A DNA stretch of 64,000 nt from Dimorphilus gyrociliatus (taxonomy: Eukaryota > Animalia > Annelida). The first letter of the stretch is position 1. The number at the start of each line of letters is the position of its first letter. The translations under genes and the position numbers were made by a program. The notes under the pieces are model-generated. The model saw nothing but the letters and a program-made list of their open reading frames with translations. It searched no databases and was not told where the DNA came from. Location: positions 1,736,968 to 1,800,967 of the forward strand of contig CAJFCJ010000009.1 of NCBI GenBank assembly GCA_904063045.1, given 5' to 3'. Below are positions 4,266 to 28,200 of this stretch, piece after piece.

Positions 4266-6558
4266 TTAATGAGATGATACTGCTTTAAAATATCTGCAAA
4301 ATTTTTCAGTTTCACGAACTGATTTGTCAGATTGACTAAGTTTTTCCAAAGCTAAATCCTTAGCCCTGATTGCCTGAGCGGAACTAAGTCCATTCAACCA
4401 CATTTCAGCAATAGATTTTGCCCTTTCCAAATTTGATAAATCTTGACTCTGATCGGAGAATTGCTGCGAATGATAAGATATTTTACGATTGTCAGGATAC
4501 TTTCTAAGAGTTGCTGAACTTTGTCTTTGACTACCGACTTCGTAAGCGGCTTGAACGACGAGACTATTAGTATCAATATAGGCCAAATTGCTCGTTTGAA
4601 AAGTAATACCCTGTAATCCGCTATGATTTCTAGCCGCTTGTTTAATTTTTACGTATTCTCTAGGGCAATCTCGTACTAGTTTCAAATAATTTAATAACGG
4701 AGTCAAATCTTCTAATTTAAGACGTTTTTCACAAACTTCCTGATTGTTGTGATTCGAAGTGGATGGTCGAACTAGTCTTCGAGTGGAAAAATCCCTGGTA
4801 GATGATTGCAGTTCATACGTTGGTGTTGTTGGTTGAGATCTAATTTGTAAATTTTTTTCCGGTGTGGAGGGTAATACTCGCCTTCTCTGGTAGGAACTGG
4901 AACTGTTCTCGTTTGCTGATTTCGTAGGAGGTCTTGGTAGTATTCTCCTATTTGTAGAACTTAGATTCTTTGCGGGTTCACTCTTAGGTCTATTTGTTAA
5001 AGAGGGTTCAGAAATCCTGAGAATAGGAGTAAATCGAATTTGTTTAGTAAGATGGGTTAAACGATTTTCCACCTCTCGTGGATGTACGCTTTCGGGCATT
5101 GCACGGACATTGTCTATATTCTTCTGAACTTTTTCTGATAGCTTCCGTTCATTAGTCATCATAGTTCTAGGAGTCACAGGAGCGCTCATCGGCCTAGTCT
5201 TTTGTTTACTTTCCGGTAATTTAACAACAGAACCAGTTGGTCCTGTAGCTCGAACGTTTTCAACGTCCCTAGATAAAGATCGCAAATTATCCATTGAAGT
5301 ATAGCTAGTGTGATTTGTTCTAAGGGATGAACAATCGGCAACTTTATTGTTAGTCAAACTACGAGAGCGTTTGGTTAACTTAGCAGCTTTCGGTCTTTTA
5401 AGAACAGGTACTCTCTCCTGTTCCTTCACTGATTTAGTTTGCTTCGTTGCTGATGATTTACGATTTTTCATTATAGATAAAGCCTTTTTGACTGTTTCTT
5501 CCGTGTCTCTTCTTACCTGCTCTCGGCTTGGTGGGGCTTGATATCTATCCGGACTTGCTTCTGATTTTATAGGATTATTGAAACTACGATCCGGACTCAT
5601 TGCAGTTCGAGTGGGGCTCATTGCGCTGCGTCGTGGGTCTACAACACTCCGCTTCGGACTGGAGTTGCTTGGATTGGGAGCTATTCTAACTTGTCGATGC
5701 CTATCTCGTGATCTTCCTCGTTCTTCTAGTATGCTAGTTGTTTTAACGGTTTGGGGAACCTCGACTGTACCGGGGAGTAGTTCTAACGTTGGTTCGGAAT
5801 GAAATTCATCTTCCTGATTTTTGACAATATCATTCAAAGCCGGACGCTTAGCGTTGGGATCTTTCCGGTTACTGTTAGACAGATAACTGTAATTCCAATC
5901 TATATCATCGAAAGTTCTGGGCTTTGCAGGTTTTGGAGGTTCAGTAGCGGTAGAAATCCTTTCAACATGACCATTCATTATTGGCGCATCTTTCTTAAGT
6001 GTTTCATTATTACTTGTATTACTATCTTCTTGAACGTTATCACTGTTTTTCGTATCCGTAACAATACTTGTCTTATCTTCATTAATTGTTGGTAAATTTA
6101 CATCAACGTGAACTTTATCCCGATATTTTTTATGTTTTTTAAAATGTTGATGTTCAATGGTTCTTGCATCTTTCCTCGTTTTGGGCGATTCGCCCGTAAC
6201 AGACACAGTTATCTCACAATTATCAATTAGCTTCTTTTCAGTACTTATAGGTCTACTCTGAATAACTTGATAATCCTGTTGAGATATTAATGTTCTAATA
6301 ACATCTTCTTCCCTCTGCCAGCTACTTCTCGCAACTTTCTTAACTGAGAAAGATCAGCGGCTTAATATATTAAAATATCAACACAAGTGTTTTTCTAATA
6401 CCTTTTATTGAGCTCCAAGCTCCCATGGGACGGGTAGTTTCTTCCGGAGTTTTCGGTAGTTGACGTCTAGGTTTCTGCTTATCATCTGAACTATCCTTAA
6501 ATGGTTCAACTCTATCAGTTTTTGATGATCTTAGTCGGTTATACAGTTTTCCAAGCAT
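4266..6558 (-). CDS. Uncharacterised Ser/Arg/Pro-rich, largely disordered protein (~744 aa, 2 exons)
   Basis: Exon 6558..6402 joins exon 6343..4266 in frame through a 58-nt GT-AG intron; 646-aa open frame in the track; no family recognised. Confidence 0.75.
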
Positions 6559-6894
6559 TTTCTCAACGGCTCTGAACGAAAAAAACACATACGCCGTCGT
6601 CTAGCGAATAATGAACAATTTTTTTGCTAAGCCTCCCCAGATTAACTACGGTTGAATTGTGTTAAGTCTACAATTAACTGGGAGGCACAAAGCCGTATCT
6701 ATACTGTTAATCAATAACTAAAGATCCTATATTAACCTTGCTGTATTTTGTAATGAATTAATAGCATACAGGTTTATGTTTACACTAGTTTTGTATACCC
6801 TCCAGTTATTTCGACGACCGTTTCGTATTCGTTTACAATTAAACGTGAGAACGAGCAATCTAAAGAATACATTGAAATATAATAGTGAATAAGC

Positions 6895-8271
6895 CTAATC
6901 GTCCAGAGGGAATTCATAAATAGTTGAATGTTCATAAACATCTCCACAATTTATAACGCAATTGGGAAAGTTTTTCTGTTTAGGAAGAAAAAGAATAGTT
7001 TGTCAAAAATTCTTTATCAATATTGGAATAATGTTATTTTTATATATAATTGAATCTTATCAATTTACCTGGTTAATGCAATTAGGGAAATTCTGGGCCT
7101 CTAGGCATAAAGCAGCGTGGGAATTATACTTTTCATGATTTTTTCCAACATTATCCAGGTGATTTCCTGTATAAAATTGTAAACCTGCCTGCGTTGTATA
7201 GACATTCATACGACGTCCACTTTCGTTATGACGAACGCTGATAGGCGCATAATATAATATAAATTTGCATAATAATTTATTTATTAAAATTTACAAACCG
7301 TGCAACTAGTTGAATATCTCTTTTAATTTCTTTCCAACCTTTAACGCAATAATTATTGTCGTAACCGTTTAGTTCAGGCAATTCTTTTATCATATCACCC
7401 ATTAACTTTGGTTTCCTTAGATCAAAAGGTCCGGTTACTTGGACTATTTGACCAGTTGGTATATTATTTACGGCAGGCGTATACTCGTCGCATAAAATTT
7501 GAACGCTATGATTATAAACATCTTTCTCTTTCATGCCGCTAAGGTTAAAGTAAGAGTGATTTGTAATATTGCAAGGAGTTGCCTTATCCGTTGTTGCGTT
7601 ATAATCAATCTTTAAACCGTTATTATCGGTTAGTGAATATTTAACGTTAAGGGTCAAATTTCCAGGGAAACCTTCTTCGCCATCAACCGATTTGTAAGTC
7701 ATTGTCACTGCCGAATCGTCCACTACAGTAGTATAGATTTTCTGTTTAGATAATAGATTAAGTGGCTTTATTATAGTTAATCGTATTTCGAAACCTTATT
7801 AAATCCTTCTTTCCCGCCGTGCAAGGTATTAGGGCCGTCATTAGCGTAAAGTTTATCGTAAAGGACTCCGTCACAATAAAATTTTGCATTGGCAATCCGA
7901 TTAGCGAATCTTCCAATTGTGCAACCGATATATGGTATATTCTTCGTATACTCTAAAAAAGCAATTATTCTATTAGGAATGGCGAATATTAAAATCATCT
8001 GTATAGACTGTTCAAACCTTCTAACGTATCGTATCCTAAGACAACATCACCTTTAATACCATGTGCATCAGGTACTTTAATGGACGTTATTGTTGCTCCA
8101 TAATTTATTATAGAAACCTCAATAGACTCGTTTTGTAGTGTATACCTTTCATTAAAAGATTATAATCATTTAACTCGGAATAATGCTATCAAATGTATTT
8201 TATTACTTCTTTATTATGGTTTCTCCATTATGCAATGCACCAAAGACTTCCTCTAGAATTTTAGTAGGCAT
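6895..8271 (-). CDS. GALM: Galactose mutarotase (aldose 1-epimerase)
   Basis: Spliced motifs [77 protein letters not shown]; catalytic His and Glu present. Confidence 0.95.
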
Positions 8272-8672: not shown

Positions 8673-10454
8673 TTATTCAAATCCAGTTGTTAGGGCAGTA
8701 TTATGTACTCTAAGAACAACAGGAACGGATGTACAAGGTAACATTCCAATTTCGGTTATGACTAATGAGACTAAATCTGGTGGTGTTACGTCGTAGAGTA
8801 TGTTTAATAAATATAAATTTTCCATTGTTTTCCAATTTTCCAAAGGTTTAACTAATAGACCATTTTCCACAAGATCGCTGGGATCATCTAGAAATGTGAA
8901 AAGAAATTAGGAAGGTTTATTGATAGTAATAAAAATAAATATTCTTGTTAACATACCTAATTCATTAAACACGAATGAATCGGTTTGTACTCTATCGCAA
9001 AATTTATAAGTTTCACAACAAACAAGTACAGGAACATTATAAACTTTGGCAGCTAAGGCAACTTGTCCGCTACCAATTCTACACATTACATAACCATTTG
9101 CCAATAGACCATGTGCTCCTAGAAAAACCTTAGTCACCTGTAGATGACGTATTTTAGAGAATAAATAATTCAGATAGTTTCAATATTGAATACCTCTTTC
9201 ATAGCATATGCTGTCGCGTTAATTAAAGAATAGGAACATTCTATACCTTCTTTCAACAATTTTCTCAACATTTCTTTTCCTAATAGCAGAAGCAGTTGGT
9301 TTTTTTTTTATAGGAAATTGTTAAATAAATGAATGATATCTATACCTTCCATTCTTGGTCTTCCATCAACTACTATCACCCTAAATTGTATCTTTCTTTC
9401 ATGTGCTTTGCATAATACTTTCAGTATAAGAGAAGAGCTGTTAAAAAAATGTAAATTAAACTACTACATTCACTATATATGATTAAACTGAACGGCGATA
9501 ACTTACGCTCCATATGTTAAAATGACATCACCATTTTTTATCTTGTCAGCCGCTGTGTCAGAAATAGCTTCATCGGCAAGGATTATCTTTTCTTTAATAA
9601 AGTCATCAATACATTTACGCAGAGTCTCTTTTGCTTTATCATCGGGTTCTGATGATTTTATGTTATTTAAATTATATTTAAAATATCTGATAGCGTTTCC
9701 CATAGAGACTCCCATTGGCCGTGATTGTTTTAAAAAGCTGATTTGAGGCTTTAACATGGCATCAAAGTCTCTATTTAACTCTTTATGCAGAGGTGTAGAA
9801 TAGTCATTGATAAGTTTTTTCAAAACAGATAAAAGAGCTATGCATCGAGCGTTGGAGCCACAGATCACTCCTTGAGCATATTGCACTCCAAGACGAATGA
9901 CTGCCGGATGAATTGTATGAGAAGCGAATGATATTGTTTCAGTTAACGTATTTTCTCTTTCGAATTGATTCAAGTGCGAAAATAGACCGACTTTGCGCTG
10001 AAATGATTTACGTTGAGGAACCCGTTGTTTCTCTAATCTTTTGGCTTCTTTCTGCTGTGCCCTCTTATCAGACTTAACTTCAGTTGCTATACAAGCAAGG
10101 AAATAGGTTAAATAGAAGATTTAGACTATAAGCATCAACTTTTTTATGACTTACGCTCTTCTTGTTTTTTTTGTTGGTTGTCTTTTTTATTCTGCTCAGC
10201 AGCTTGTTTTTCGGCCTTTAATTTCCTTTGTTTTTCCTAAATTCAACATGTTATGACTTGTATAGAAAACAATAAAATCAAATTTAAAAAATTACTTGAA
10301 GGGCTCTTCTCTCTTCCTTCAATTGCTTTTTGCTTTTCTGAGCAGTTTCCGTATTGTCCTTTTTACCATCATTTAACTTAGAATTTTCATTTCCAGTTTT
10401 ATTTTTCATATTAGAATCCTTTGCAGTATTTGGAGGCTTATTTGATTCTGACAT
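8673..10454 (-). CDS. EIF2B4: Translation initiation factor eIF2B delta subunit
   Basis: Lys-rich N-terminus; [97 protein letters not shown]. Confidence 0.93.
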
Positions 10455-10705
10455 CTTCTGATTTATGTAATGGCAGCCAGACCTATAATAACTTTTCTGA
10501 TGCAAAAAAAAACGATTACAACGCAATGCGATTAATAAGAACCTTGCGAAAATCCAACACGACCTTTCACAATCATGTTTTAATGATTAAAAAAAATTCA
10601 TATTTTATCTCTAAATTGACGTACTGGTTAAATATTAAAATATTAGTTATTAAAAAGTGATTATCTTATGTTATAAAAAATTCGAAGACGTTGCCAAAAA
10701 CCGAT

Positions 10706-10721
10706 TTCCTGTCTCTTTTTC
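10706..10721 (+). promoter_or_regulatory. Pyrimidine-rich 5'TOP/TCT-like start region of RPL19
   Basis: ttcctgtctctttttc lies ~20-35 nt upstream of the RPL19 ATG, as is typical of ribosomal protein genes; the TSS is not known. Confidence 0.5.
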
Positions 10722-10742
10722 GATCGTGGTGAAACACGGAGC

Positions 10743-11608
10743 ATGAGGTTTCTATTTTTTTCTAATTTTACGCTGGATAATTGCTAATAGTGTACAATTT
10801 TTGACTAATTTTTTAAATAAAATTTTTTTCAATCCGATAGAAATTTTTGTATGATGTTTTTTACGGAATTCTTTGAAATTTTGTAATTTTGTTCAAACAG
10901 TACTCTACGGCTTCAAAAGAGGTTGGCAGCCTCCGTGTTGAAGTGCGGCAAGAACAAAGTTTGGTTAGATCCTAATGAAACTAATGAAATCGCTAACGCC
11001 AACTCAAGTAAGAGACTAAATTGATATTAAATTCTAATATCATTTACTATAAATGATTTGTTAATCTTAGGACAAAATGTAAGAAAATTGGTTAAGGATG
11101 GTTTAATCATCCGCAAGCCTGTGGCAGTTCACAGCAGGGCTCGTGTCCGTACAAATGAAATCGCTCGTCGTAAAGGAAGACATACCGGAAGAGGTAAAAG
11201 AAAGGGTACGGCCAATGCTCGTATGCCTGAGAAGATTGTCTGGATGAGGAGGATGCGTGTTCTTAGAAGACTATTGAAAAGATACAGAGATTCCAAAAAG
11301 ATCGACAGGCATCTGTATCACGTTTTGTACTTGAAGTGCAAAGGTACCTTAGCAAAAGCTTATTCCGAGAGAAAAATCTTAATCGTACTTAAATTTTAGG
11401 TAATGTCTTCAAGAATAAGCGTGTTCTCATGGAACACATCCATAAGAAGAAGGCTGAACGTGCAAGATCCAAATTGCTTGCTGATCAAGCTGAAGCTAGA
11501 AGGAATAAAGTCAAGGAGGCAAGAAAGAGACGAGAGCAAAGAGTAGCTGAAAAGAAGCAAGAACAGCTAAGAATGCACGCTAAAGAAGACGCTGCCGCCA
11601 AGAAATAA
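10743..11608 (+). CDS. RPL19: 60S ribosomal protein L19 (eL19)
   Basis: ATG AG|intron|T ACT: [28 protein letters not shown]; [14 protein letters not shown]; [21 protein letters not shown]; [15 protein letters not shown]. Confidence 0.97.
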
Positions 11609-11931
11609 TTTACAGTTTCAAATAAAACACTTGTCTTTGACCGTGGATTTGTTTTTCATAGTAATTTATAAAAGTAGGCGATATTTTACCTGAAGCATAA
11701 GCTCAGTGGAATATTTCATATAAATTAACACAGACAAATGAGATCAATTGTAAGTGGATTCACAGAATGTTTACAACTGTCTAAAAAGCATTTTATGCCA
11801 CTTAACTAAGTATTATTTATACTTGTACAGTTAAGATTTTACCCAGTTAACAATTTTTTTCACAAGTGAACAAGCTGAAAGACTTTCTTGAAAAGCAATT
11901 GATATAAAGTATTGGTTAGTGACTAGAATGC

Positions 11932-13317
11932 TTATGGAAATGCATCGGGATATTCGCACTTCTTGTAAAGATGGCAGTGAAGAGAGAGAAATCTTGAAAG
12001 TAAAAAATTAAGCAAACTTTACTATTTTAGTAAAAAAAAATTTAGAATTACCTTGTCGGATCTTTTGCATAGGTAAATCCCCTAACATTGATCGTATTAC
12101 TAAACGTTCCATCACCCTTGGGATTACTATAGCTAACTGTGATCTGACAGATGAGAAAAGTTTTTCCAATTGTGAAACAAGTTAATTAAATAATTAAACA
12201 GTACCTCATTATTTAGGGCACCTTCCTGATATCTCCATAAACCCTCTAAATGAGAGTGAAACCGTTTGATTTTTGTTAGTTTTGAGTTTGTGAAATCATC
12301 TGTATATTAGTAAAAAAATTATGAGTTAATACTTATGATGCATAAAGAGACAAAATCTTTTCCAATGCTTACAAATAATATAACCAATTACGCAATCATC
12401 AGGAAGGTGGATGCGTTCACATTCGCTTCTTAACTTTCCTCCACTAAAAAAAAAGAGAGTAAGTTTCACTTGCAAAGAAGACTATTGATTCATACCCTGC
12501 ATATGGTTCGATTTTTAGGGCCAAACTCCTACTAATACAAAAGCCAGCCCCACCTGTTGCAAACCAGAAATGAAATGGCTTCTGAAAATTGATTTTGACT
12601 ACTTAGAATTACAACAATTTGAATTTAATAAGTCATACTCGATCTCTATCAATTTCTAAGGGATGAGATGTAGATGGTCGCCCTATATACCAATCTCTAC
12701 TTGGCTCATATCGAGAAAGTAATTCTTTGAGAGCTTTTACATTGACATAGGTATCGTCATCGACATGACACCACCATTTTTTATTTGACTTAAGGAATGC
12801 ATCAAATTCGTATGACATTTTACAGCACAAAGCAGATCGACTATGTAAATTATCGCAATTTGTTTTAATTGATCGAAGTCCAGTTTTTTCGAATATTTCA
12901 TCATTATCATCAGTAAATACTGCAACCTAAAAGAACATTATTTCTTAATAGACGATATTAAATAAGTATTGTAAAACTACAAACGCTGTTAGGTATCAGC
13001 GATATCCAAGTTGCTCTTAGGATATCAATTCTTGATCGGTGAAACTTTTTTGTAGTTTTTATAGATATAAAAACGTCCTTCATTGAAAGAGATTTAACAT
13101 GATTCTCTTTTAAATTGCTTGTTATTACTTTTCTTGGTAGTTTAATAGTTGAAATTACTATTGTACTACTATTAGTTGTACTATTCAACGATTGAAGGTG
13201 CTCCTTTTCTGAAGAATGTTTTGGTAATTGGTACTGATTTCTTAGTAAATACAGCAACAATAAAAAAGAAGATAATAAGGTTATATTTAAACATAGCCTC
13301 TTAAGACGCAATCTCAT
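11932..13317 (-). CDS. fng: Fringe beta-1,3-N-acetylglucosaminyltransferase (GT31)
   Basis: Type II anchor; [73 protein letters not shown]. Confidence 0.92.
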
Positions 13318-13992
13318 GGCGAAGTGAAATGCATATATGCCCTCTTTTTCTTATGTAGATGATAACTGGTCCTAAAACGGAACCGGAAAAACAAACATTT
13401 TGGCGGAATTATTAAATTTTTTCTATGTAGTATAATATATTGTAAATTCATTTGAAATTTATCACGTTTATTTGTAAACTAAAGAGTCATTTTGTGAATT
13501 TTACCAAGGTTAGTTATATCTATTACACTGAACTTTAAACGATAATATAAGTATCTCTGAGATATGCAAGTTTATAAAATATTTAATGATTCTGTTTCAT
13601 ATTTTAGAATTCAACTAAAATGTTTAACAAATTAAAAAACAATAAATACTAGCTTCGGGACTAGTAGATGACACTAGTAATTTCAGGGAATTCTACAATG
13701 TTTTTGTTTCAAGTTTAGTTACTGTTTAAGCGGCTATATCACATTTCCAGGAAAACGAACGATAATAGAGGTATTTTCCAGAATTTAAAATAGACGTGAA
13801 GACACATTTCTAGTATATATATGCTGTATTAAACAGGAATTATTGATAAATAAAAAAAAGTATAATTACTGTACAAGTAATAATGGATCAAACTCACTTA
13901 ATATGTTACTATAGTGATTAAAAGAAGAGAGCGTGAGTATAATTTATTCAAAACATCCATGTACTTTCTCTTATAAGAGTCGTAGAGAATTC

Positions 13993-16060
13993 TTAATTTT
14001 GAAAAATTTCGATATATTCCCTTACTATAAATACTATATTACCAGAGAAAAGGAGTGAAAATAAAGTATGACGAAATATAACAAGCTGAAAAACAAATAA
14101 TGAATAAGATTATATATCATAATTGATATTGAAAAGATGAAGAAATTACCCATTTTGGAAGATTTGCTGAACAGTTCGTTTGGTTACAGTTTGTTTGACC
14201 ATTTGGATAAGCTTGTTGTTCTTTTTCATTCATACCATTCCCTTTTTCCTTCATATCTACATTTTCTGAGCCAGTTATTTTTTTATCTGAAGAAAAAATG
14301 GAAAGTATATTTTCCTGTGATATAAAGTATTGTAAATTTACTTACTATGTGAAGCTGTGGCATAATCAGCTATTCTCATTAATATAGACAAAGCAATATA
14401 AAACATACAGTGACCAAAGTATACCCAAAGCATCCATTTTGGCATGTTTATTTTTCCTAATCTTGTGCCAACCATCATTACAAAAACTGAAGCATACAAA
14501 AGCTTATCAGTAATGGTATTTTGTAACGGTAAAATAATATTTAAATGCATTGTTTTTCAACTACATACATCCGAGTGAATAAGACAGGTATCCTACTATT
14601 GTATGGCAAGTTACGAAGGTGCTTCGATGCTGAGAGTCTAAGCCTGGACGTAGCATTCCCATAATTGGCTGTTTAGTTTAGTTGAAATTTTAATAAATTA
14701 AGATATAAACGGTAATATTTACATTTATCACAGCAAATGACATAACAATTATTCCGACAATCGGATGTGCCTTTGTAAAACTAGTGGCCGGCTGAAGGAA
14801 AAACAATTGGAAATTATCATTTATCAAGATGAAATAGGAAGAAAGAATAAATTTATTTACGCTGGAATATCCTCCAACTTCTACGAATATTAAGATAAAA
14901 GCAATAGAACTTAATAGTACACCGGATAATACGAAAATTCGATGCAACTGAAAGGTAAATCGACAAGTTTTTAAAAAGGGAAATATAATTTGACATTTGA
15001 TTTCTAACTTACCCAAAACCACAATTTAACTCCTTTACAATCTTTATTTCCAATGTAATCTTTGTAATACCTTGCAATAAATACTCCACAAGGAATAAAG
15101 AATGCCCAGGCAAGTGTCATTAGAGCGGCATGAGCTTTAACACGACCAGGCGCCGCATTTGAACCACCAGTATTTTTCTTTGTAGTCAAATCAACTTTAT
15201 CAGTAATTTTTTTATTGTCACCATGATAAGTCAGTTTAGAATCAGATACACTGCCTCTTGCGACAAACAAGTGATATTCTGTTCCTGCGCTAATGTTAAA
15301 AACTTGACTGCCAAATTGCGCTTTATTTCTTGAAAAACTGCATCTTACTCTTGAATCTTCAACTTCAGTTTTAACAGAAGTAATTCCATTATAATTGGAA
15401 ATTGTCTCCGGGGTTGATTGTCCCTTTGAATAAGAAATCTCGACTCTTGGATTTGAGCCGGATATTTTTAAACAAGCGAGTATAGAATCGTCACCCATCT
15501 TCTTATCTTTTGACAAGCCAAGTGCAACATAGTCAGTTTTTGCAGACATTGAAAAATCTACTAAATCCCCATTATCTTTCCAAGTAATCATAGCGTCACA
15601 CTTAAATTCGTCACTACAATCGTCGGGTTCCCGATAGCATCCTATAGTTGTACCACATTCTTTTTCAATATCTCCAGCCTATTAAAGTCTTATATTAGTA
15701 ACAATTCCATAATATATTACATACATCAAATCTAACTATCAGTCATAGTAGGCTAGAGGTGAATTTAAGAAGGTTTTTCAAAGTATTTGATACTAATAGT
15801 ATAAATTATCGATTGGGGTTAAAATTAGGAGCATTTACATTTTAATGAAAGTCAAAGATTCAATAGTGGTATAAACCAAAGCAACTTGTTTCTAATAAAT
15901 AGAAGGAAGATTAGCATAAATATAATTGATCTATCTAATCTAATATTCGAACAAAACAATAAAATTGTTTTAACGACTTCAAATATAAATAGAAAGAGTT
16001 TACAACCTGTATTAAAGTAGACATGCAGAGAAGACATATTATTCTTAGCCGAACTGTCAT
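13993..16060 (-). CDS. FRRS1: DOMON + cytochrome b561 protein, ferric-chelate reductase 1-like, no reeler domain seen
   Basis: Signal exon MTVRLRIICLLCMSTLIQ| (phase 0) joins the DOMON exon (KMGDD, TYHG). The b561 domain keeps all four heme His (KAHAALM, LHRIF, KAHPIVG, TCHTIVG); last exon 13993..~14088 encodes a terminal hydrophobic segment. The symbol denotes family, not proven orthology; the start is inferred. Confidence 0.85.
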
Positions 16061-16707
16061 CGTATCCTCTTTTCTTCTTGTAAATACTGTTAATTTTTAA
16101 GAAAAATTTTATTAAAATCCCTCTCTTAAATCTTATACCAATAAATTATTGCCCAGGTAAGTTCCAATAAAAACAATATCTTTATAATAACCTATGTATA
16201 TATAGAATCATACAATTGTATAAATTAATTCATACTATATATATACGTACTAACAATCCGCCAGACAGTCGTAATATTATGCAGCAGAACTAGTCAAACT
16301 GTAATGTTTATTGAATTTATATTTATATTCTCTACCTTTGCCTGGTTACTGATTCCTCTTCAAATGGTTAACCTGTAATCAGAGCAGCTCAGAATCATAA
16401 TGGACATGGAAACTGATGGCCAACGTATCTTTTGTGTCTAATCTTTAAAAATAGATTTTTATATGTAATTAGTGCATTAAAGATAGTACATAAAATTCCC
16501 ATTGTTTAATTAAAATTTATATGCATTCTTACTAATATATTGCATTCATCATAAAACTATATTTTTAAATTAAAACTATTATCAAGTGAATATAAACAAT
16601 TGTTTTGTTTGCGATGAAATGCGACAAACGTAATATATAGATGAACTTTAATGTCCTGTTTACCTGTTTAATGAAAAGGACGATCCCAAACCTAGAGAGG
16701 GGGGAAA

Positions 16708-16717
16708 GCTGAGTCAT
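16708..16717 (-). promoter_or_regulatory. Candidate antioxidant response element (ATGACTCAGC)
   Basis: Exact RTGACnnnGC core with embedded AP-1 site, ~650 nt upstream of the FRRS1-like ATG; sequence match only. Confidence 0.35.
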
Positions 16718-17002
16718 GGTTAATAGTGGGAAAAAGTGTCTCATTTTATAGGTTTTCAACTTTTATATTATCCATAATTCCTGAGAATTCTAGCTATAAT
16801 TAAGATTAGAAATATGAAATAGATTCGATATTGCTCAGATTTTAATACATTAATTGAGTAATTTAATTAAATATATGATAATCTACTAAATTTTAGTTTG
16901 TAATTGGTTTGTTTTATGTTATGATTAGATAAGATTATACCAATTGTGGGATAGTGAGCTAGTGCTATTGAAGTTATTAACTAATGAAAGAGCTCATAAA
17001 TA

Positions 17003-17005
<3 letters not shown>

Positions 17006-17035
<30 letters not shown>
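17006..17035. repeat. (GA)15 microsatellite
   Basis: Read directly. Confidence 0.95.
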
Positions 17036-17039
<4 letters not shown>

Positions 17040-19235
17040 AGCTTTATTAATCTTTTTTTCATCTTTTTTCTTAAAAACTAAAAAGTGCACTTTTTTTTAC
17101 AGAAAAAAAATCTGCACTGAAAAATCTAGGTGGGTTATTTATGATACAAATGTTTACTACTAAATAACCTTGACCGGGCGCGATGATTGATTAAATTGAA
17201 TATGTTTTTTTACTGCTTTCTGAGTGAAGTACATAACTAACAGTAAAAAATTTTAGCTTTGAAAAGATAGTAAAGATATAGTCTTATATTCTTTTGACGT
17301 AGAAAGTAGGTTTCTATGAGTAGTTGTAACATTTTATTTATATATGATTTCAATCATAAAATATAACGGATCTCTTCTCTTATAACTTAAATTATTGAAA
17401 AGGGTGACAAGAAAGGGAAGATAAGTGATTACGTGAATAGAATCATTGGTCTATTTGTCGCACTATACTGAGCTATATCAGCGTCAACTATCTTCTTTAC
17501 AATAAACATCTGTAAATGAATATGTACTAGGTAATTAAAGTAATCATCATTTTTTCAGCCATATTTTTTGTTGATGGTAGTTTTAGTGCAGGAGAAAATA
17601 AATTGAAAATACTGCACTATAACCCTCTTATGCTCACTAGCTGTTTCCATAATAATCATGATAAAGTGTATATATTTTCCAACAATATTATGAAAACAAT
17701 TCAATAATTTATACTTCTTTATCACCATGAAAATACGAGAGCTAATGTATGATGAATATATAAAAATAACTATAAATAGAAAATATAAGTGATATTAAAT
17801 AGTTCCAAGCTTATTATCTCTTCATAAATATTGCTGGTTAGTTGTTTTCTTTGATGAAGAAGATTCAGTATGTTGCTTTCGTTATAAAATTCTGTCAACT
17901 TGCTCTCCTTACTAATTCAGTTGTTCCTTAATAGTTTAATTTAGCGACTGAGTAGATTCTTCTTACTTGAGAAAACAGTAATTGTCAATGATGTATTCTG
18001 GAAAAATATAGTAAAAATAGTAAAAACAAAAGAATTAAAAGTATACAAAACTTATTTGGAATTATATTACAATCTTTTCTTTAGTATCATCTTCTTTTCT
18101 TAATAATTTTGAGACAATTTGACCTATTTCTTTTCCCTAAGATGAAAAATTTTCTCAACATAGAATAGATACATTATATCTAATTTTGATGTATTTCTAG
18201 TACGAAATATTCAGTCACTGGTGAATTTCTCATCTCATTTCTAATGTGATAAAGAGATTTCATTACACTTGCCAATCAGAATTTAAAATAATAACGCAGT
18301 AGATATTGAGGGTTTATCGTCAAATTTCTGCAAACATACCTGTAATATCTTATTATCTAGAGAGAATTATTGAAGATTATGCAAAAGAGAATAATAGATA
18401 ACTTATCTCTATGTTTCGTTGTCTGTACCATTTTGTCTACTTCAAATTATTAAATATAATAATTACATTTTAAAATTAGTCTTTATTATTCTAATAATAA
18501 TTTTATTTAGTGATAAGAAATGACCTACTTTATATTAATACTATCTAAAATTAATTGTTATGTAAATTAGGTGACTATAGATTTATTGTTTTAAGAAATA
18601 AGACATTATATATATATATATCTGTATATAAAAAAATGAGAGTTCACTTATAGTTTGTATTCTACATAGAAGTTGACAAAAGTTGAGTGCAAACTTTCTA
18701 TTAGAATATTTAATTAACTAAGGCTTTTAGAGATATTTATTAACGTACATATACATACACACATATAAATTTTATACTATATTTGTACGAATTTATATAA
18801 TTGATGGAATTGATGAAATAATAGTGAGATGCTATCTTCAAAGAAACGAAAGCTCCTAACACAGACTAAATATGGTAGTTAGAGAACTGATAGAATATTC
18901 TTTAATCGATAGGTATAGTCTACTTTTGGTGTTTTTCTCTTCAAATATATTTCAGTACTAATCACTAAAACACCCAGAAAATGGAATCTATGTAAAGTAA
19001 CTATAAACAGTCTTTTTTTGTTTATGTACTTTGCCATAGAGCTACGTTAAAGGCGTTAAAACATTATTTATTTGAAGGAATATACCTAAAATTAAGAAGA
19101 ATTTAATTTATTCAAATTTAAACATTAATATTATGAATATGCATAAGGTACAGCATTGACGAATAGAATAAATATATTAACAAAATAAGAACATATCACA
19201 ACAGTGTCTTCAATTAACAATGAGGCAGATATACG

Positions 19236-19970
19236 TTATCTCGTTAAATAGTATAGTTTCTCAAGGACAAAGGGTGTTAAAGCGGAGAATAATATGTTGA
19301 AAAAGTTGCTTTTAATCAAATTTCCTGTAGCGCCTAGTCCATGAGGATTTATTCTAAAGTAAATACTTTCTACCGAATAATCTCTGTCATTGAAATGATA
19401 ACCGACTTTATCATTTCTAGTTTCTCCTCCAGCCGTTAAGAGAAAGAAATTGGTGGAGGTAAAATCAAAGGGCGTAGAAGTATATTTTTTACGTAACAAG
19501 GAAAATCGGCATCGAATGACTGAGTCTCTAATTTCTTCTCTCGCATTTGAGAATCCTCCAAAATCAATTTTACTTAAAGTTTTGTAATATGACCTATAAG
19601 TTTCTAAAGTTGGAAGTCCCTCAGACGTTTTACGGCATAGCTGAATGTGATCTCCACCCATGTATTGATCTCTAGAAAAACCCATAGCAACGTAATCTTT
19701 TTTACCCATCATTTCGAAATGAACGAAATTGTTTTCAGCTTTCCACGTAATAATTCGTTGACAACTCTTCTCACTATTACAATCTGCTGGTACTTTGTGA
19801 CAAAATTTATCCTCGTCACAGTCGGATAGGTCAATTGCTTCACTCTGAAAAAAGTGGATGAAGCAAGTAAACAATTTTTACAGTGGTATGATCGATAATT
19901 GGTGAGAAAATACCTGAACATTTATTACAGTTGTCTGCAGTATAATAATAATAATACTTATGAGCTTCAT
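19236..19970 (-). CDS. Secreted single-DOMON protein, possible GPI anchor or C-terminal membrane tail
   Basis: Signal exon MKLISIIIIILQTTVINVQ| plus DOMON exon (DYVAMGFS, YMGGD, RCRF, GYHF); moderately hydrophobic C-terminus ending in charged residues. Confidence 0.85.
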
Positions 19971-20844
19971 CCTAAAGATGAGATTTTTCTCTATCAAATA
20001 TAAACATAATTCAATTAAATTTATTAAAGAAGATATTAATTTATATGGAATTAGAGACTATTTACATAATCTCCAAGGTGCTACAATCGAGCCCAGTTCG
20101 TTGCTCTCATGCCTTTCTATACGTATTGAACTAAGGAAAGCAATGAATCAGAATAATCTTTAGTATGGTTACCTGCTAAAATTTAAACATAGATATGTCC
20201 TGGATACTGATCAAGGAGTTTGTGACGAAAAACAAGTAAAGCATGCAATGAATCATTCAAGATTCCAAGCTTAAGTGTTCAAAAATTTATTTATTTTTAA
20301 AACATCAGGATGGAAAGTGATATCATTCACTTGTTCAATTAATTAAATACTTAATACATTATGCTATTTTTAGCATTTTCATAATTTAACAAAAGAAAGA
20401 AAACTCCATCAATATTCTATTTCTTTAATGTGCAATCATTTAAAAAGAATTACAGTATTATTCAATGAAAAAAATAAAAAATCTTCATTCTAGCACACCC
20501 TCTCACCCATGTTTCATCTCCCTCTCTCTTTCATTGTCTATCTGTACTTGAATATTTTTTTTTTTTATTGAAAACTCCAATCAATTCTCTTTCGGGCAGT
20601 AACTACAAACACGGTTTGTGCTTTTGTTACAAGGTGTAGTCATTCAGAGCATACAGGCCTACAGTAATATCATTCTAACATAAGGAAAAAACTGTAAAGT
20701 CATTGTGATTAAGAACGAGTACCTATAAATAAAAGGGTATTTGTTTAGAATATTTCAAACGTATGTATTATTATACTACAAAGAACTATTTAAAAGTAAT
20801 ATTTTGGAAGGTTTTAACAGCTATTTGTTGTTCGACCATACATA

Positions 20845-21595
20845 TTAATTAAGAATTGCAGCAAGCACAAATAATAGACTGGTTAAGGTTACAATCTTAA
20901 GATTATTATACGTTGTTATTGAATTTCCCCCAGATCCACCAGATCCGCCAGATCCACCAGATCCACCAGAATTTGGCTTTTTGGAGAAGTCAATTTTAGA
21001 ATCTGTAAAAAATCTTGATGAATGTCGTGTTAGGCCGTTGCCTTCTGTGTCTCCTATCGCCACAAATAGGATATACGACTTTCCCGATCCTATATCAAAA
21101 ACATTGCTATTTCCTGTAGACTTGGGTCTGTCAAATTTGCATCTAAGAACGGCTCCGTCAACTTTGTTACTTATACCAGTTAGCCCATTGTAAGAGACAT
21201 CACTTGGTGGAGATCTGCCGCTAGACTTGTAGGTTTTAACTACTGGACCTCCTGAAGATTGCTTTAAACAGGCGTGAATAGAATCGTCACCCATTACCTT
21301 ATCATTTGAGAAACCAATACCAATATAATCCTTCTTACCAGCCAATTCGAATTGGATTGAATTTCCATTTTCTTTCCATGTAACAATAGCACTGCAGTCA
21401 CCTTCATCTTTGCAACCTGGTGTTTTCCAACAATTTATGGTTTTGCCACATTCAGCCAAATTAATTTTCTGTCCCTGAATTAATTTTCAAAGTTTTTTCC
21501 TAAAAATATAAACATAAAACTATCTGTACCTGAATGAACTGGAATAAAAAGCAGGCTATAAAAACGCAGAAACTGGAATGATTAGTAATTTCCAT
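20845..21595 (-). CDS. Single-DOMON protein with Gly/Ser linker and GPI-like tail
   Basis: Signal exon MEITNHSSFCVFIACFLFQFIQ| plus DOMON exon (GIGFSNDKVMGDDSIHAC, RCKF, TRHS); GGS linker; tail IVTLTSLLFVLAAILN*. Confidence 0.87.
20927..20970 (-). repeat. Coding 9-bp tandem repeat encoding (GGS)n
   Basis: ccagatcca-type unit about four times; translates as SGGSGGSGGSGGSGG. Confidence 0.9.
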
Positions 21596-22193
21596 TTTTA
21601 AATTGAAACTTTCAAATTTTTTTTATAATTTCTTTTAAAATGGGTAATACTGATTAATTGCTTTGTCCCTGTTTACTTTACTGGTACGTTTGGCTCCCTC
21701 CTACAGATTATATACGTTTGCGCCGCAATTGAAGTGTGGTTGCCTGTCCCTGATAATTTACTTATTGGATAATTATAGCAGATTATCTTGAAACATACAG
21801 TATATAGTATTACATCTAATTTACATAAAGATATGCTAATTTTATGGTATATATAAAAGAGAATAGTAAGAACCAGGGTTAGGGTATTTAAACAGTAAAA
21901 TTACACGTAAACCAAACATTACTGTGTTAAAAATAAATATAATGAAGAACTGGAAATTAACGACAATAATTTTCAAGAAATATAATATTTAAAACTAGAC
22001 ATTTTGATAAGAATTACATTCACTGATATATCAATATTTGTATTTCGTATATATCACCAAACAAAACAATTTAGCATGGTTTCAATTATGCAAATTATCT
22101 ATGTTTTGAAGCTAACTGGATATTATTATAATCTCATTATAAATGAAACGTTTCATTATTATCTTAAAGCATATGAAGAAATTATATAAGAAT

Positions 22194-23441
22194 TTAATTG
22201 CTCAAAACTTGAATAACGATGAGGAGAGTGGACGTTAAAAGCAAGATTGATAAATTGCTTTTTATAGCTTCAGCTGAGCTTCCAGCGGGTGAAGAGGTAT
22301 AATCTATTTTACCATCAGAATGACCTCTTTCTGCTTTAACATGTGCTGTTAGTTCGTTTCCTGATAGGTCTCCCATTGCCCAAAACAGAATATACTTCTT
22401 TCCTGAATCCAGATCGAAAACATCTGTATTTCCAGTTTTTTGGGGTCGGGTAAATCGACATCGAAGTACTGAACCCTCACTTTCAATCTTTTTATTTGTC
22501 AACCCATTGTAGGAAACAAGTGGTGGCTTACTTTCGCCAGTTGACTTGTAGGTATTAATAACAGGATTTCCTGTTGATGGTTTCAGACATGCATGAATAG
22601 AATCGTCACCCATAGCTTCATCACTCGAAAAACCAATAGCGGCATATTGTTTCTTTCCCATTACCTCAAAATCTAAATCGTTTCCATTTTTTTTCCAAGT
22701 GACAATACCGATACAATCTGTTTCATCTTTACAGCTGCTTGGTTTCTTCCAACAATTTTTCGTTTTTCCACAGTCAGTCATATCAAGATTTCCAGTTGAG
22801 GGTGAAGAAGGAAGTTTTGTGTAATCTATTTTACCATCAGAATGACCTCTTTCTGCTTTAACATGTGGTGTTAGTTCGTTTCCTGATAGGTCTCCCATTG
22901 CCCAAAACAGAATATACTTCTTTCCTGAATCCAGATCGAAAACATCTGTATTTCCAGTTTTTTGGGGTCGGGTAAATCGACATCGAAGTACTGAACCCTC
23001 GCTTTCAATCTTTTTATTTGTCAACCCATTGTAGGAAACAAGTGGTGGCTTACTTTCGCCAGTTGACTTGTAGGTATTAATAACAGGATTTCCTGTTGAT
23101 GGTTTCAGACATGCATGAATAGAATCGTCACCCATAGCTTCATCACTCGAAAAACCAATAGCGGCATATTGTTTCTTTCCCATTACCTCAAAATCTAAAT
23201 CGTTTCCATTTTTTTTCCAAGTGACAATACCGATACAATCTGTTTCATTTTGACAGCCGCTTGGTTTCTGCCAACAATTTTTCGTTTTTCCACAGTCAGT
23301 CATATCAATTTCGGCATTCTATAATAAATAAACTAGACTTATCTCACCTCGAAGACTTTTTATGAGAAATACTACCTGAATATAAGCGATAGATATAAGG
23401 AGAATTACGGACCAAAGATAGAACATTGCCTCCTTCATCAT
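22194..23441 (-). CDS. Double-DOMON protein with GPI-like tail
   Basis: Signal exon MMKEAMFYLWSVILLISIAYIQ| plus an exon with two near-identical DOMON domains; tail SSAEAIKSNLSILLLTSTLLIVIQVLSN*. Confidence 0.88.
22298..23308. repeat. Direct tandem duplication, 522-bp period (copies ~22298..22786 and ~22820..23308)
   Basis: Seven substitutions counted by eye over ~489 aligned bases. Confidence 0.95.
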
Positions 23442-25221
23442 TGTCAATTGTAGGGAACTGTTTCAATAAACGTGTCTATTAATGTTACTAAAAATAAGAG
23501 AGACAGAGAGAGAATACACTGTACATGTATAGAACAATTAATAATATGAATAACATAAGCTTACGCTTATATATCATCTCATATAAATATCATCTTTCTG
23601 AACATGAAAAAAACGACTAGTTGACTTTCCACATTGATTATTTTAAGGGCGTTTTATGTTTATTAATATTTTATACTATTACTTTCTAACAATCTATTCA
23701 AACTTATAATTTTACGTTTTGTTGATCTTTTCCGGCCATATTTGAATTCCTCCCTACAAGAATTTCTAATAAACTATTGAACTACTTTGAATTCTATTAT
23801 TCAGTATTTGAAACGTCAACGACCTGTTACTGCATCTTAAATCTATGCAGTCCTGTTAAGAGAATTATATATTAGTATATTAATTTGTATTTATATACTG
23901 TATATACTTGTATATATTCTGTAAATTATTTATAAAACAATTCAGCATTTAGAAGATAACAGGAAATTATCAATTATATTAATAAACTTTAGAAAATAAA
24001 ACTTCTTCAATTAGTAAATAAACAAACGAAAGACAAATGACAAAAGAAACAATGCCGAATATCTTAATAAAAAATTATTTCTACATTTAACTCACCTCAA
24101 ATTTTTATTTAAACTATTCTAGAGTTTTCAACGTCTCTCTCAACACTTTTTTGAGAATTGAATGAAAGAAAGTAAATTTATCGAATAGGCCTATATTTAA
24201 TCTGGTTGCTTACCAAATGATATTTTTAATATAAAAAGAGTTGATTTTCCTACAGCAGAAAATTCTAAATAGTATACTTCTGGCTAGATTTTAATAGAGT
24301 GAATTGAATATTAATACGAATGCTGAATATGACTCATTGCATCATAGCAAACCAAGTAAAGTCGTGATATAAGTTTTTTCTCCCCATGTTCAAGTGACTA
24401 TGATTCAAATATAAATGTAAAACGTATTATTCTTATCAATTCCCCATCTCTCAATATTAAACAATTGGCAGTTGAGTTGAAACTTTTGAAATTCACTGTC
24501 GACCCTACTTGTGCTTGTTTAAATATTAAAAGCTGATTTACGTTATATTTAACAGAACAATATAGCTTCAATACCCAGAAGTGGGATTGTATTTCTTATT
24601 GTAGGCTTAAAATTTCAGTTCATTTTCTTACTTTAGCACTGTAATATAGTATTTATATTGTGGAATAAATATCCTTTTTTTTCAATAGGAAATTGTCATA
24701 TACATTTTCTTATTTCTTAGTTGTTTAATTTCTAAGTTGTGCTATAGATTTTGTCTCAATAAATGAGTATTATTAAAATATATACTATATACAGTATATA
24801 CACGTATTTCTTCTACCTATGTACGTGTAAATGTTCTATTATTTAATTATACTTTTCATTGAAATAACTTAAAAAAAATTCTAATGCCTTGAAATGTACT
24901 TGAAACTTTATTTTTCTCCTTGCCCTACAGGTGACCTGAGTCACGTAAGTCACGCAAGTCTGACTATACTTCTAGACTAGACAATTGTTCTCTGTACTGA
25001 ACGAAAAAAGTAATAATACTAGGGAACATACCAATCGAAAAGGACATAAGTGCATGGAAATAATAGAAAAGATGCAAAGCTATTCATTGAAAAAAAAATT
25101 GAATTGATATAACTCATATTTCAATCTTTCTGGTCTATATACTTAAATATTCAACCGTTATTACATTTAAAAAGGAATTATAGTATATAAATATATTTCA
25201 TTCTGTAGTATTTATATTGCA

Positions 25222-28200
25222 TTAGTTTGAAACTTTCTCTTCGTTCTTGTCAGTTTTTATTGAGCTGTTCTTGTGAGCTAGTTTCTTCCATTTTAGTAAG
25301 TTTATACTTTAAGGTTTAAAAAAAAATTGAAGCATTTAGTAGAGAGATTAGACTGTAAAACAAAAACGTACTTTGACCATTCAACGAGACATTTACATTC
25401 TGGTAGAATTTCAGATAATAGTTCGTAACATGGTAAACAAATACCCACAATAAATCCTATTTCTAGTTCGGGAAGTTCGTCCTTTTTCTCTCTATCCATC
25501 ATTGGAATTACTTGCATACCCAATTGCTTTTCTTCGTCACCCTCCATTAAGGAATTGTAGAATGATAGAATGATATAAATAAAAAATGTTAAAAATTATT
25601 CTTATTTGATTAAGGTATTACTTGATTCCAAAATTCTTCCATAACTACAAAGACCAATTGTAATTGTAAGGACCACGGTTTATACATGTTACATAAATCC
25701 GAAGTTGTCATAGTAATAGCCATTGTAAGATTTCTACTTTGTCTATCGTTCCAGCCAAACTTTCCAGAGTCATAAATCTCTCTTAATTTCGCCCTATTAC
25801 CAAAATACAAAGCCAAATCTGTAGCTAAAATACAATGTTTCATTATAAGTAGGACTTCTTCGTATTCATCAGGAGTAAAATATTCAAATATGTTATGCTC
25901 CGGATACTGCAAAATAACTGTTGTTTGTTGAAAATGATGTTGTTCCATTGTACTAGTTGGGTACATTAGGGCAAGAGGAGCTTTTCTATTAACTAGATGT
26001 TGATTTGTGTATCCTCGATGATCAACATCGTGACATAGACAAGCTATATAAATAGCCATGACCTAATTATATATAAATATATAAAATAAGATTTTAAGTT
26101 AAAATAAACAACGATCGAATAATAAAAGAACCTCTAAAGGTCTAAACTGATGAGAAGTAGACTTTAAGATGCTATATGCGGCATTAGCAACACTAAATGC
26201 ATGAGCCCAATTATGATATGGTATATTTCGATAGTGTTTTCTAACGGTAAGAACAAACTTCATCATTGTTTGTAAATTAAACCTAAAAAAAAGTTTCAAT
26301 GTATAGTTAACAGTATTAAATTCTTTATTTATGCATATTTCTCTTACTTCATATCCGGTCTCGATTTCCTTTTATAAAAATATTCCACTGTTTAGTATCA
26401 TTTTATATAAAATACTATTAAAAAATATACATACTGAACCATGACCATTAATTCTTTAAACATGAACAACACTATGACAGGACGTTTTTCACTCTTTATC
26501 GACCAGGGAGAGAAATCGAATTTTGTAAGTACTGGAAAAGATTCAGGTATCTTTTCTTTTCTTAGACTTTCTATCTCTTCTGGAGTTGCTGTTACTTGAT
26601 AATGAAGCGTATCATAGGCTATCTGATTCCTTAATTTTAACGAATTAAACTTATCAATTATCTTTGCGTATTGTAAAGTAAGAGCGCAACAAGTGCTAAT
26701 ATTTTCAATTAAATTCTCATCTTCTTTAAGGAATCTTCCATCAATTTTATTAATAAGTTGAAGAACGCCAATGGTCCTTTAATATATATATATATATATA
26801 TATATGCATATTGCAATTGGAAAATCAATGTTTAAATTAGATACCTTCTCCTTATGATAATTGGGCAACAAAGTGTTGTTTTAATATTAAAATCTAGGTC
26901 ATCGTTCATTGATCCATTACACCTAGAATCTTGAATTGTGTCCGTTATATTTAAAATTTTACCATTTCTAACTGTCCAACCAATACAACCAACATCAGCT
27001 GAATATCGAATTTCTAATGAACCTTTATGAGTTTCATTTGTAAACTCTTCAAAATTTTTACTATAAACTTCATTATTCTTTTGATCTACAAGAAATATAA
27101 GCGATTTTTCGGCACCTAATAATTCCTTAGATATTCTCTACTATGTGGGAAAAAGAGGCCATACTATTTTAAATCATCCTTATTGTTTTTATTAGTATAT
27201 GTATATATATATACGTTACCAAAATCTTATTCAGTACATCGTCTATTGGAAATTTCTCATTATATAACGATCTATTTAATTAAAAAATGATGTTAATGAT
27301 TAAACACAAATTAATAAAACGACTATATATAGTACTAACTTAATTGTAGATATCGTAAACTTGTTTAGTTTATCCTGTTGCCTTTGAAGACGTTTTAACT
27401 AATAATTAAATACAATATATACACAATAGACTGTATAAGGATTATTCATACCTCAAATCCGTAGAATAGCATATCCGATTGATAGCTAATAGTAGTTAAA
27501 AACTACAATATAGTAAATATTTATTATTAACGTAAAGGAAAGATAATAAATCATTAACATTTTCCTCAGTTTCCGTAAAAGGGAAATTTAAGGATATTCG
27601 ATAAATTTCTATTACACCAATTAATTGAGATTCTTCAATATTTATGATTGGACATGTTAGAATTGAAGTTTCTTCTTCATCGCAAATATTACTGTTTAAA
27701 CCCTCCGGAAAGTTTTCATCCTATAAATAAAGTATATTTAATACAGAAGAATAAAAGACTAATTTATCTGAAAGTACAATTTGTAGATCTTTTGAACAGT
27801 TTACTCTAATAACTTGATTTTTAAATGCTGAATAAGCGGCAATATTTCCACCTGGCTCAATTCTCCAAGATAGTAAGCTATTAGCTTTATTTCTATAGGA
27901 ATAGTATAAAATATCAATATATGCTATTTGTTAATTAAATAATTAAACAATTTTACCCTCTATTAGGTGATGAAAAATATATTGTTTGATTTCCATCATC
28001 ATAAGGATAGGCGTTATAACCGTCAGCTGAGAAAACTGTTTAATATAGAATTATATTATGAATATTCAAATTTAATTAATTATCAATTAGTTAATATTCA
28101 CTCTGAGATAGAGTTTCTCCTAATCTATGAAGAAAATTAACGGAATCTGCAGAGTCAGTAATATATTTTGCCGATTCAAAGAATTTCCTACGAATATCAT

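Follow-up and report, generated by a model that had tools for sequence, protein, structure and literature searches.

A 64,000-nt stretch of the genome of Dimorphilus gyrociliatus, an annelid of the family Dinophilidae, carries four minus-strand genes that lie head to tail at positions 13993–23441 and share DOMON domains; we letter them A to D by rising coordinate and call the whole stretch the window. We consider it probable, on comparative grounds, that this array is a dinophilid tandem family descended from a CYBDOM gene of the FRRS1/SDR2 type (DOMON plus cytochrome b561), in which gene A keeps the intact form and genes B–D encode surface DOMON cytochromes. For these surface proteins, we infer glycosylphosphatidylinositol (GPI) anchoring and heme binding; any redox partnership with gene A is conjectural. 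Five Pfam-significant DOMON copies within 9.4 kb (two of them in gene D) are far beyond chance, and no further DOMON was found outside the array within the window, which is AT-rich (~31% G+C) and over 17.7 kb matches contig CAJFCJ010000009.1 of the D. gyrociliatus assembly GCA_904063045.1 at 100% identity.

Domains, tails and transcripts of the array genes

The DOMON exon of each gene matches the Pfam DOMON profile (PF03351) above its cut-off of 32.7 bits, with scores of 55.2 for A, 60.1 for C and 123.6 for D (over two stretches), and a marginal 33.2 for B. When aligned (alignment A1), all five domains share six invariant cysteines, the stretch S-x-D-x-x-M-G-x-D and an invariant histidine; the invariant methionine falls in KMGDD, YMGGD, VMGDD or AMGDD, and the histidine in YHG, YHF, RHS, PHV or AHV. 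An earlier reading of this DNA (the original prediction) had quoted exactly such motifs for four consecutive six-Cys DOMON genes on the minus strand; its count of genes stands, while the second DOMON of gene D had been missed. Both residues are also invariant in the orthologs of a related animal (alignment A3), and among 366 domains of the wider family the methionine is retained in 359 and the histidine in 294. In the animal CYBDOM proteins CG8399 and SDR2, the same two residues align with the heme ligands Met65 and His163 of cellobiose dehydrogenase (CDH), and the conserved SxDxxMGxD stretch that holds the methionine is a proposed metal site (PMC10691727). Every local domain fits that motif and keeps both putative heme ligands, a pattern that suggests heme binding by all five.

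Gene A is best supported as a Reeler-less, FRRS1-type transmembrane protein with a predicted reductase role. No Reeler domain was found in the gene, whose exon 1 runs straight into the DOMON, and exons 3–8 supply the remainder of the b561 that begins in exon 2 (Table 1). The comparison was made exon by exon with P0017, a transcript-derived ortholog of 443 aa that a related animal encodes on a transcript-like contig (1.5 kb): every exon aligns, and the four b561 histidines (KAHA, LHR, KAHP, CHT) are conserved. P0017 also stands in for the joined protein in the Pfam test, where it matches both DOMON and Cytochrom_B561 (PF03188, E 1.4e-07), and the DOMON–b561 architecture was likewise tabulated for P0017 and for P0035.

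All four genes begin on a shared two-exon plan: a signal-peptide exon of 18–22 codons (ending in CAG, with gt opening the intron), a phase-0 intron of 55–328 nt and a large DOMON exon. Genes B, C and D stop inside this second exon, each ending in a hydrophobic tail. In gene C, a (GGS)n linker leads to the GPI-like tail NLKIVTLTSLLFVLAAILN, and gene D ends in SSAEAIKSNLSILLLTSTLLIVIQVLSN; these two tails and those of their orthologs pass from small residues through a polar spacer to 15–17 hydrophobic residues that extend to the C-terminus, and they look like a GPI-attachment signal, by which the two proteins would be anchored. The tail of gene B, FFNILFSALTPFVL followed by EKLYYLTR, could act either as a GPI signal or as a short anchor in the membrane. 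The predicted composition of one four-His b561 gene and three DOMON-only genes with signal peptides and hydrophobic tails is thus borne out, by the P0017 alignment for gene A and by spliced contigs for B–D.

These contigs, from three public runs aligned over positions 19000–23600, show that each of B, C and D yields its own correctly spliced mRNA. Intron 1 of gene B (19845–19913) is skipped in runs X2 and X5 (joint 19844/19914) by contigs that cover 19092–19844 and 19914–20095. In the same runs intron 1 of gene C (21475–21529) is skipped (joint 21474/21530, with a 1-nt shift possible) by contigs that cover 20350/20380–21473 and 21529–21706, and in the RNA run X6 intron 1 of gene D (23319–23375) is skipped (joint 23318/23376). 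All three genes were found in each of the two whole-animal transcript assemblies (X2 and X5). These two runs, listed as “DNA?” and “?,” behave as transcriptome assemblies, with intron-less contigs of B and C.

The public annotation (GCA_904063045.1) draws the locus differently: genes C and B are fused into one 418-aa model (window 19236–21595), and gene A is fused with a downstream Fringe gene as DgyrCDS7680 (665 aa; window 11935–16060). On L005 the fused models take up 5123–7482 and 10001–14786. Such models, together with the marginal Pfam support for gene B, are what one would expect if the “four genes” were a gene-calling artefact that conceals fewer, longer genes, or if B–D were decaying, functionless partial duplicates; we regard either as highly improbable. 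In two runs the contigs end between C and B (20095 vs. 20350/20380), each with its own signal-peptide exon and stop codon, and an AATAAA lies just ahead of the 3′ end of the gene B contig; in addition, the frames are intact, and the relative has intact orthologs with low ratios of nonsynonymous to synonymous divergence (dN/dS, given below). The fused models (C + B; A + Fringe) look wrong, and the transcript contigs show C and B as separate mRNAs.

Relatives and origin of the DOMON-only genes

Searching 1.84 billion representatives with a profile of the five local DOMONs gave 1,688 proteins at E ≤ 0.001. Their architectures are one to eight DOMONs, with or without a preceding Reeler, followed by b561, plus many DOMON-only proteins; among named proteins, gene A comes closest to lophotrochozoan “ferric-chelate reductase 1,” most examples of which have a Reeler. 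Two phylogenies, one of 366 domains and the other a careful IQ-TREE analysis of 52 rows, agreed (supports as ultrafast bootstrap/SH-aLRT). Specifically, one dinophilid clade of 12 rows (94/90) unites the five local DOMONs with seven domains of related dinophilid-like samples and is sister (97/90) to the three DOMONs of DgyrCDS2746, the worm’s own Reeler–DOMON3–b561 protein, and both groups nest inside lophotrochozoan FRRS1 DOMONs. Genes B, C and D group together (93/93) in a sub-clade that lies among sequences like gene A, with gene B as the most diverged copy (terminal branch length 1.57). An approximately unbiased (AU) test, on a group chosen after the tree had been seen, rejected the union of the local DOMON-only genes with hemichordate FRRS1L-like/FRRS1-like DOMON-only proteins (log-likelihood difference 55.4, p = 0.000135).

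Because the local DOMONs fall into one dinophilid clade inside the lophotrochozoan FRRS1 DOMONs, and because this union is rejected, B–D appear to be local, dinophilid-specific duplicates and not FRRS1L orthologs, in a tree that does not include vertebrate FRRS1L. A grouping of the DOMON-only genes with FRRS1L, the outcome that the original prediction had named as speaking against its proposal, did not emerge; the genes lie among gene-A-like DOMONs, and this position and the AU result speak against B–D as ancient FRRS1L orthologs, with vertebrate FRRS1L again outside the tree.

The array is also present in the relative. The order on contig L001, which is 29.9 kb long and comes from a related sample, is a PDE gene, a two-DOMON gene (P0002), a C-like gene, a DOMON-only gene in the position of B (P0025) and an A-like gene with b561 exons. 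Array orthologs of the two species share 33–57% identity: 56% between P0002 and D, 52% for the C-like gene (which has a similar Gly-rich linker and hydrophobic tail) and 55% for the A-like gene. With dN/dS at 0.15–0.34 and synonymous sites saturated (dS 1.3–2.7), these comparisons point to purifying selection on all copies since the species split. The relative further contains a second cluster (L008 200–5500; Logan SRR23372228) of about five DOMON-only units, whose DOMON is interrupted by an intron and which have no b561 in the vicinity; the DOMON-only family has therefore expanded beyond the array.

Genes B, C and D correspond to exons 1–2 of gene A. In alignment A3 their tails fall on A’s first b561 helix (TM1), at the same exon position and with the heme histidine replaced: VKAHAALMTLAW in A aligns with IKTYNYLITFT in P0025, KSNLSILLLTS in D and YNNLKIVTLTS in C. 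When scored on a profile built from the A-type linker and TM1 of dinophilids, P0025 reaches 18.8 bits and C 6.7 bits, and none of 200 shuffles attains either value. No b561 relics were found downstream of B, C or D in a search within the 64-kb window. In the relative, apparent homology past the stop codon of P0025 proved to be AT-rich noise. An anchor signal derived by truncation after TM1 is positionally reasonable; it is backed for P0025 and weakly for C, and is hypothetical for B and D.

In the history suggested by these comparisons, an FRRS1/SDR2-type CYBDOM gene would have given rise to a tandem family specific to the Dinophilidae. Gene A would represent the intact form, with a signal peptide, an extracellular DOMON that probably holds one b-heme on its Met/His pair and, after it, a six-helix, four-His cytochrome b561; proteins of the cytochrome b561 family transfer electrons to the outer face from ascorbate in the cytosol. 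Genes B, C and D would descend from duplicates of the first two exons only (signal peptide; DOMON, linker and first helix), their reading frame ending within or just after the former first b561 helix and leaving a short C-terminal hydrophobic peptide that may now serve as a GPI-like signal (C and D) or a minimal anchor (B). Gene D would then have doubled its DOMON again. The products of B–D are most likely cell-surface b-type cytochromes of AIR12/FRRS1L architecture, apparently kept by purifying selection.

The doubling in gene D lies within a single 374-codon exon; for the gene as a whole, the public annotation has a 396-aa DOMON model. Its two DOMONs differ by a dS of 0.05, and because the paired DOMONs of the relative’s ortholog P0002 are just 48% identical to each other, the 99% identity of the gene D repeat suggests recent gene conversion or re-duplication. 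In the DNA run X1, contigs over this repeat have a word depth of 386–689 vs. ~190 alongside; gene D may exceed two copies of the repeat in that sample, or the assembly may have collapsed there.

Several points weigh against the proposed descent and biochemistry. The Met/His assignment comes from alignment and a published HHpred comparison for CG8399, not from a heme-bound structure, and heme binding by animal stand-alone DOMONs (here genes B–D) is something that we infer. The tail of gene B is an atypical, ambiguous and weaker GPI candidate, since eight partly charged residues follow its hydrophobic stretch. The tails of D and B do not exceed shuffles against the dinophilid A-type linker-plus-TM1 profile, and none of the tails (B, C, D and their dinophilid orthologs) is significant against a profile of 100 CYBDOMs from outside the dinophilids. 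The transcript evidence spans B–D and consists of contigs, which carry no expression levels or tissues. Finally, the Atlas clusters nearest to gene C by language-model features are chordate FRRS1L (0.95), which in its vertebrate form is absent from the tree; by structure, the nearest clusters are chordate FRRS1 (TM 0.79) and then FRRS1L (TM 0.76). Such closeness to FRRS1L and FRRS1 of chordates reflects a common architecture and fold and is not evidence of orthology.

The coordinates of the array and its flanking genes are collected in Table 1. In the relative, a PDE gene likewise lies upstream of the array; downstream, an ORC5-like gene occupies the place that Fringe has in D. gyrociliatus. 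The ~3-kb gap between A and B (16100–19090) holds no open reading frame (ORF) that matches DOMON or b561; a (GA)n-type simple repeat near 17000–17040 reads REREREREREK in the ORF at 16984–17163.

Table 1. Features of the DOMON array and its flanks (window coordinates).
Feature	Position	Strand	Details
Gene A, DOMON–cytochrome b561 (CYBDOM, FRRS1/SDR2-type without Reeler)	13993–16060	minus	448 codons, 8 exons
Gene A exons	16060–16007, 15678–15013, 14947–14861, 14791–14723, 14668–14569, 14486–14346, 14286–14150, 14085–13993	minus	all introns GT-AG
Gene A exon 1, signal peptide	16060–16007	minus	
Gene A exon 2, six-Cys DOMON, linker and first b561 helix (VKAHAALMTLAW...)	15013–15678	minus	Pfam DOMON E 1e-14; alignments A1, A3
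Gene A exon 2, Met codon of SKDKKMGDD (putative heme ligand)	15498–15496	minus	alignments A1, A3
Gene A exon 2, His codon (putative heme ligand)	15225–15223	minus	alignments A1, A3
Gene B, DOMON-only	19236–19970 (exon 1, signal peptide, 19970–19914; exon 2, 19844–19236)	minus	221 codons; Pfam DOMON E 6.7e-08
Gene C, DOMON-only	20845–21595 (exon 1, 21595–21530; exon 2, 21474–20845)	minus	231 codons; Pfam DOMON E 3.3e-16
Gene D, two-DOMON	22194–23441 (exon 1, 23441–23376; exon 2, 23318–22194)	minus	396 codons; Pfam DOMON E 7.2e-36, 2 stretches
Gene D DOMON 1	about 23306–22785	minus	
Gene D DOMON 2	about 22784–22263	minus	
Gene D internal tandem duplication	22297–23118	.	522-nt period; 300-nt cores 22297–22596 and 22819–23118, 99% identity (repeat search)
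PDE catalytic-domain gene, flank upstream of array	25302–26059	minus	
Fringe-like glycosyltransferase gene, flank downstream of array	11935–13317	minus	

Fold and possible functions

Exon 2 of gene C, the only gene modeled, was folded with AlphaFold from a 146-domain alignment, and the model (mean pLDDT 86.5; disordered only in the Gly-rich linker and the tail) shows a beta-sandwich DOMON fold. Foldseek linked it at probability 1.00 to 4zel, 6jt6 and 1d7b. In VIA-align the best PDB fold match was the DOMON of dopamine beta-hydroxylase (DBH; 4zel, Z 13.0); the cytochrome domains of pyranose dehydrogenase (6jt6) and CDH (1d7b) matched at Z 11–12 (root-mean-square deviation 3.6–4.0 over ~150 residues) and CBM9 modules at Z 7. 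PDB sequence and profile searches, with 5 and with 146 DOMONs, gave no credible match, and only the fold comparison linked the domain to solved structures.

That the closest of these structures, the DBH DOMON, is heme-free, with CBM9 also among the matches, speaks for the main rival to a redox role, namely that the DOMON-only proteins act at the surface or in the matrix without redox chemistry (in ligand binding, adhesion, a chaperone-like role or the extracellular matrix), with the DOMON as a binding module. Models for such a role are FRRS1L in AMPA-receptor assembly and the abalone shell-matrix Reeler/DOMON “ferric-chelate reductase-like” proteins; indeed, secreted FRRS1-like Reeler+DOMON proteins are abundant in the nacre matrix (PMC6003135). 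Some members of the DOMON superfamily bind sugars or lack a cofactor, the clusters closest to gene C in the Atlas feature search are those of FRRS1L, and gene B evolves fast. We nonetheless judge this role unlikely. The Met, the His, the SxD..MGxD pocket and the six Cys are invariant both locally and in the relative’s orthologs, despite saturated synonymous divergence, and the Met/His pair that they preserve is missing from sugar-binding DOMONs and from DBH (PMC10691727).

Surface cytochromes, as we prefer to read B–D, need not form a circuit with gene A. A working extracellular electron relay, as the original prediction proposed, in which A would move electrons from ascorbate through the membrane and on to GPI-anchored, laterally mobile B–D that reduce ferric iron or surface/cuticle substrates, has in its favor that every component it requires is found, and is conserved as a set, in two species, that B, C and D co-occur in each of two transcript assemblies (X2 and X5), and that plants offer a precedent, with Arabidopsis AIR12 and the CYBDOMs CRR and HYP1 acting on one apoplastic iron pool (bioRxiv 10.1101/2024.12.25.630297). 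Yet tandem duplication fully explains the linkage, which in itself is no functional evidence, and it is on linkage that the proposed relay is built; moreover, the DOMON-only cluster at L008, with no adjoining b561, implies that DOMON-only genes need no linked reductase. Such a relay therefore strikes us as rather improbable, somewhat more so than a non-redox role.

Similarly doubtful is a broader generalization, that FRRS1-type DOMONs are modular extracellular heme carriers that animals have repeatedly built into electron-transfer systems, with the array as a relay and a like truncation behind FRRS1L and AIR12. Such carriers would take two forms: b561-fused chains (up to eight Met/His DOMONs, in echinoderms and other marine invertebrates) or free, GPI-anchored units that a truncation behind the first b561 helix had separated from a CYBDOM gene. 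Chains of 5–8 DOMONs before one b561 were seen in other marine invertebrates (P0001, P0003–P0007 and P0012), including an Amphiura filiformis protein with 6 DOMONs and b561 and another protein, of 1804 aa, with 8 DOMONs. Most repeats in these chains retain the Met/His pair, and the chains could be multi-heme extracellular chains; we know of no description of b561 proteins with 5–8 DOMONs.

Hemichordates and many other invertebrate gene sets contain DOMON-only proteins of the FRRS1 type that start with a signal peptide and end in a GPI-like tail. The array architecture is not unique, because these proteins, like DOMON chains, are found in many such sets. No b561 gene lies within 10 kb of the hemichordate DOMON-only genes, which is uninformative in such large genomes, and neither gene C exon 2 nor the hemichordate FRRS1L-like P0127 brought up anything useful in word-index protein searches. 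The literature yielded nothing under D. gyrociliatus with DOMON, under the DgyrCDS gene ids or under the SRA runs, and we found no papers that describe invertebrate DOMON-only proteins. The statement that no such linked set had been described in an animal consequently survives as regards the locus, on which no paper was found, and has to be narrowed as regards the architectures, DOMON-only and CYBDOM proteins both being already known. What is new is an independently arisen, syntenically conserved set of a parent gene and its truncated offspring, not a new kind of system.

What is understood of stand-alone DOMON cytochromes comes from plants (AIR12) and hardly from animals, where vertebrate FRRS1L is the known stand-alone case. 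To our knowledge, the one role described for FRRS1L is in assembling AMPA receptors, and none has been described in vivo for FRRS1/SDR2. Here stand-alone DOMON genes appear to have been caught as they arose from a CYBDOM gene, with parent and offspring still adjoining, and kept so in a second species. The locus thereby offers a natural experiment on whether animal stand-alone DOMONs bind heme, carry GPI anchors and cooperate with a b561 reductase, in an animal with a compact genome that can be kept in laboratory culture. Two fused models of the public annotation are corrected as well, and the locus makes a tidy—but not revolutionary—case of gene-family growth.

Comparison with known systems

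The original prediction cast the array as an animal parallel to plant CYBDOM/AIR12. The parallel is imprecise. B and C resemble AIR12 in architecture, and gene A is an ordinary homolog of the known animal CYBDOM FRRS1/SDR2/CG8399 (PMC10691727). Like these proteins, gene A encodes an extracellular DOMON with the SxDxxMGxD methionine and the histidine, followed by a four-His b561. It differs from most animal FRRS1, and from the worm’s own DgyrCDS11159 and DgyrCDS2746, in having no N-terminal Reeler, and it heads a tandem array of truncated paralogs; its reductase activity is predicted.

With plant AIR12, a GPI-anchored b-type cytochrome made of a single stand-alone DOMON, genes B and C have in common a signal peptide, one Met/His DOMON and a C-terminal hydrophobic candidate GPI signal (weaker in B), as well as coexistence with CYBDOM proteins. 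The local genes nonetheless nest among animal FRRS1 DOMONs, a position that indicates independent origin and convergent architecture, and their domains match PF03351 with no match to PF04526 (the plant DUF568 family appears only lower in the Atlas list). Gene D departs further in having two DOMONs, and in all the local genes heme and GPI anchor are putative.

Vertebrate FRRS1L resembles the local DOMON-only genes as a stand-alone FRRS1-type DOMON with a C-terminal hydrophobic segment. Unlike FRRS1L (in its vertebrate form outside the tree), the local genes appear to be dinophilid-specific duplicates of a DOMON–b561 gene. The cytochrome domains of CDH and pyranose dehydrogenase (1D7B and 6JT6) are only 13–16% identical to gene C in sequence and have the same fold as its model; it is in fungal cytochrome domains of the CDH type that Met/His ligation of heme b was solved.

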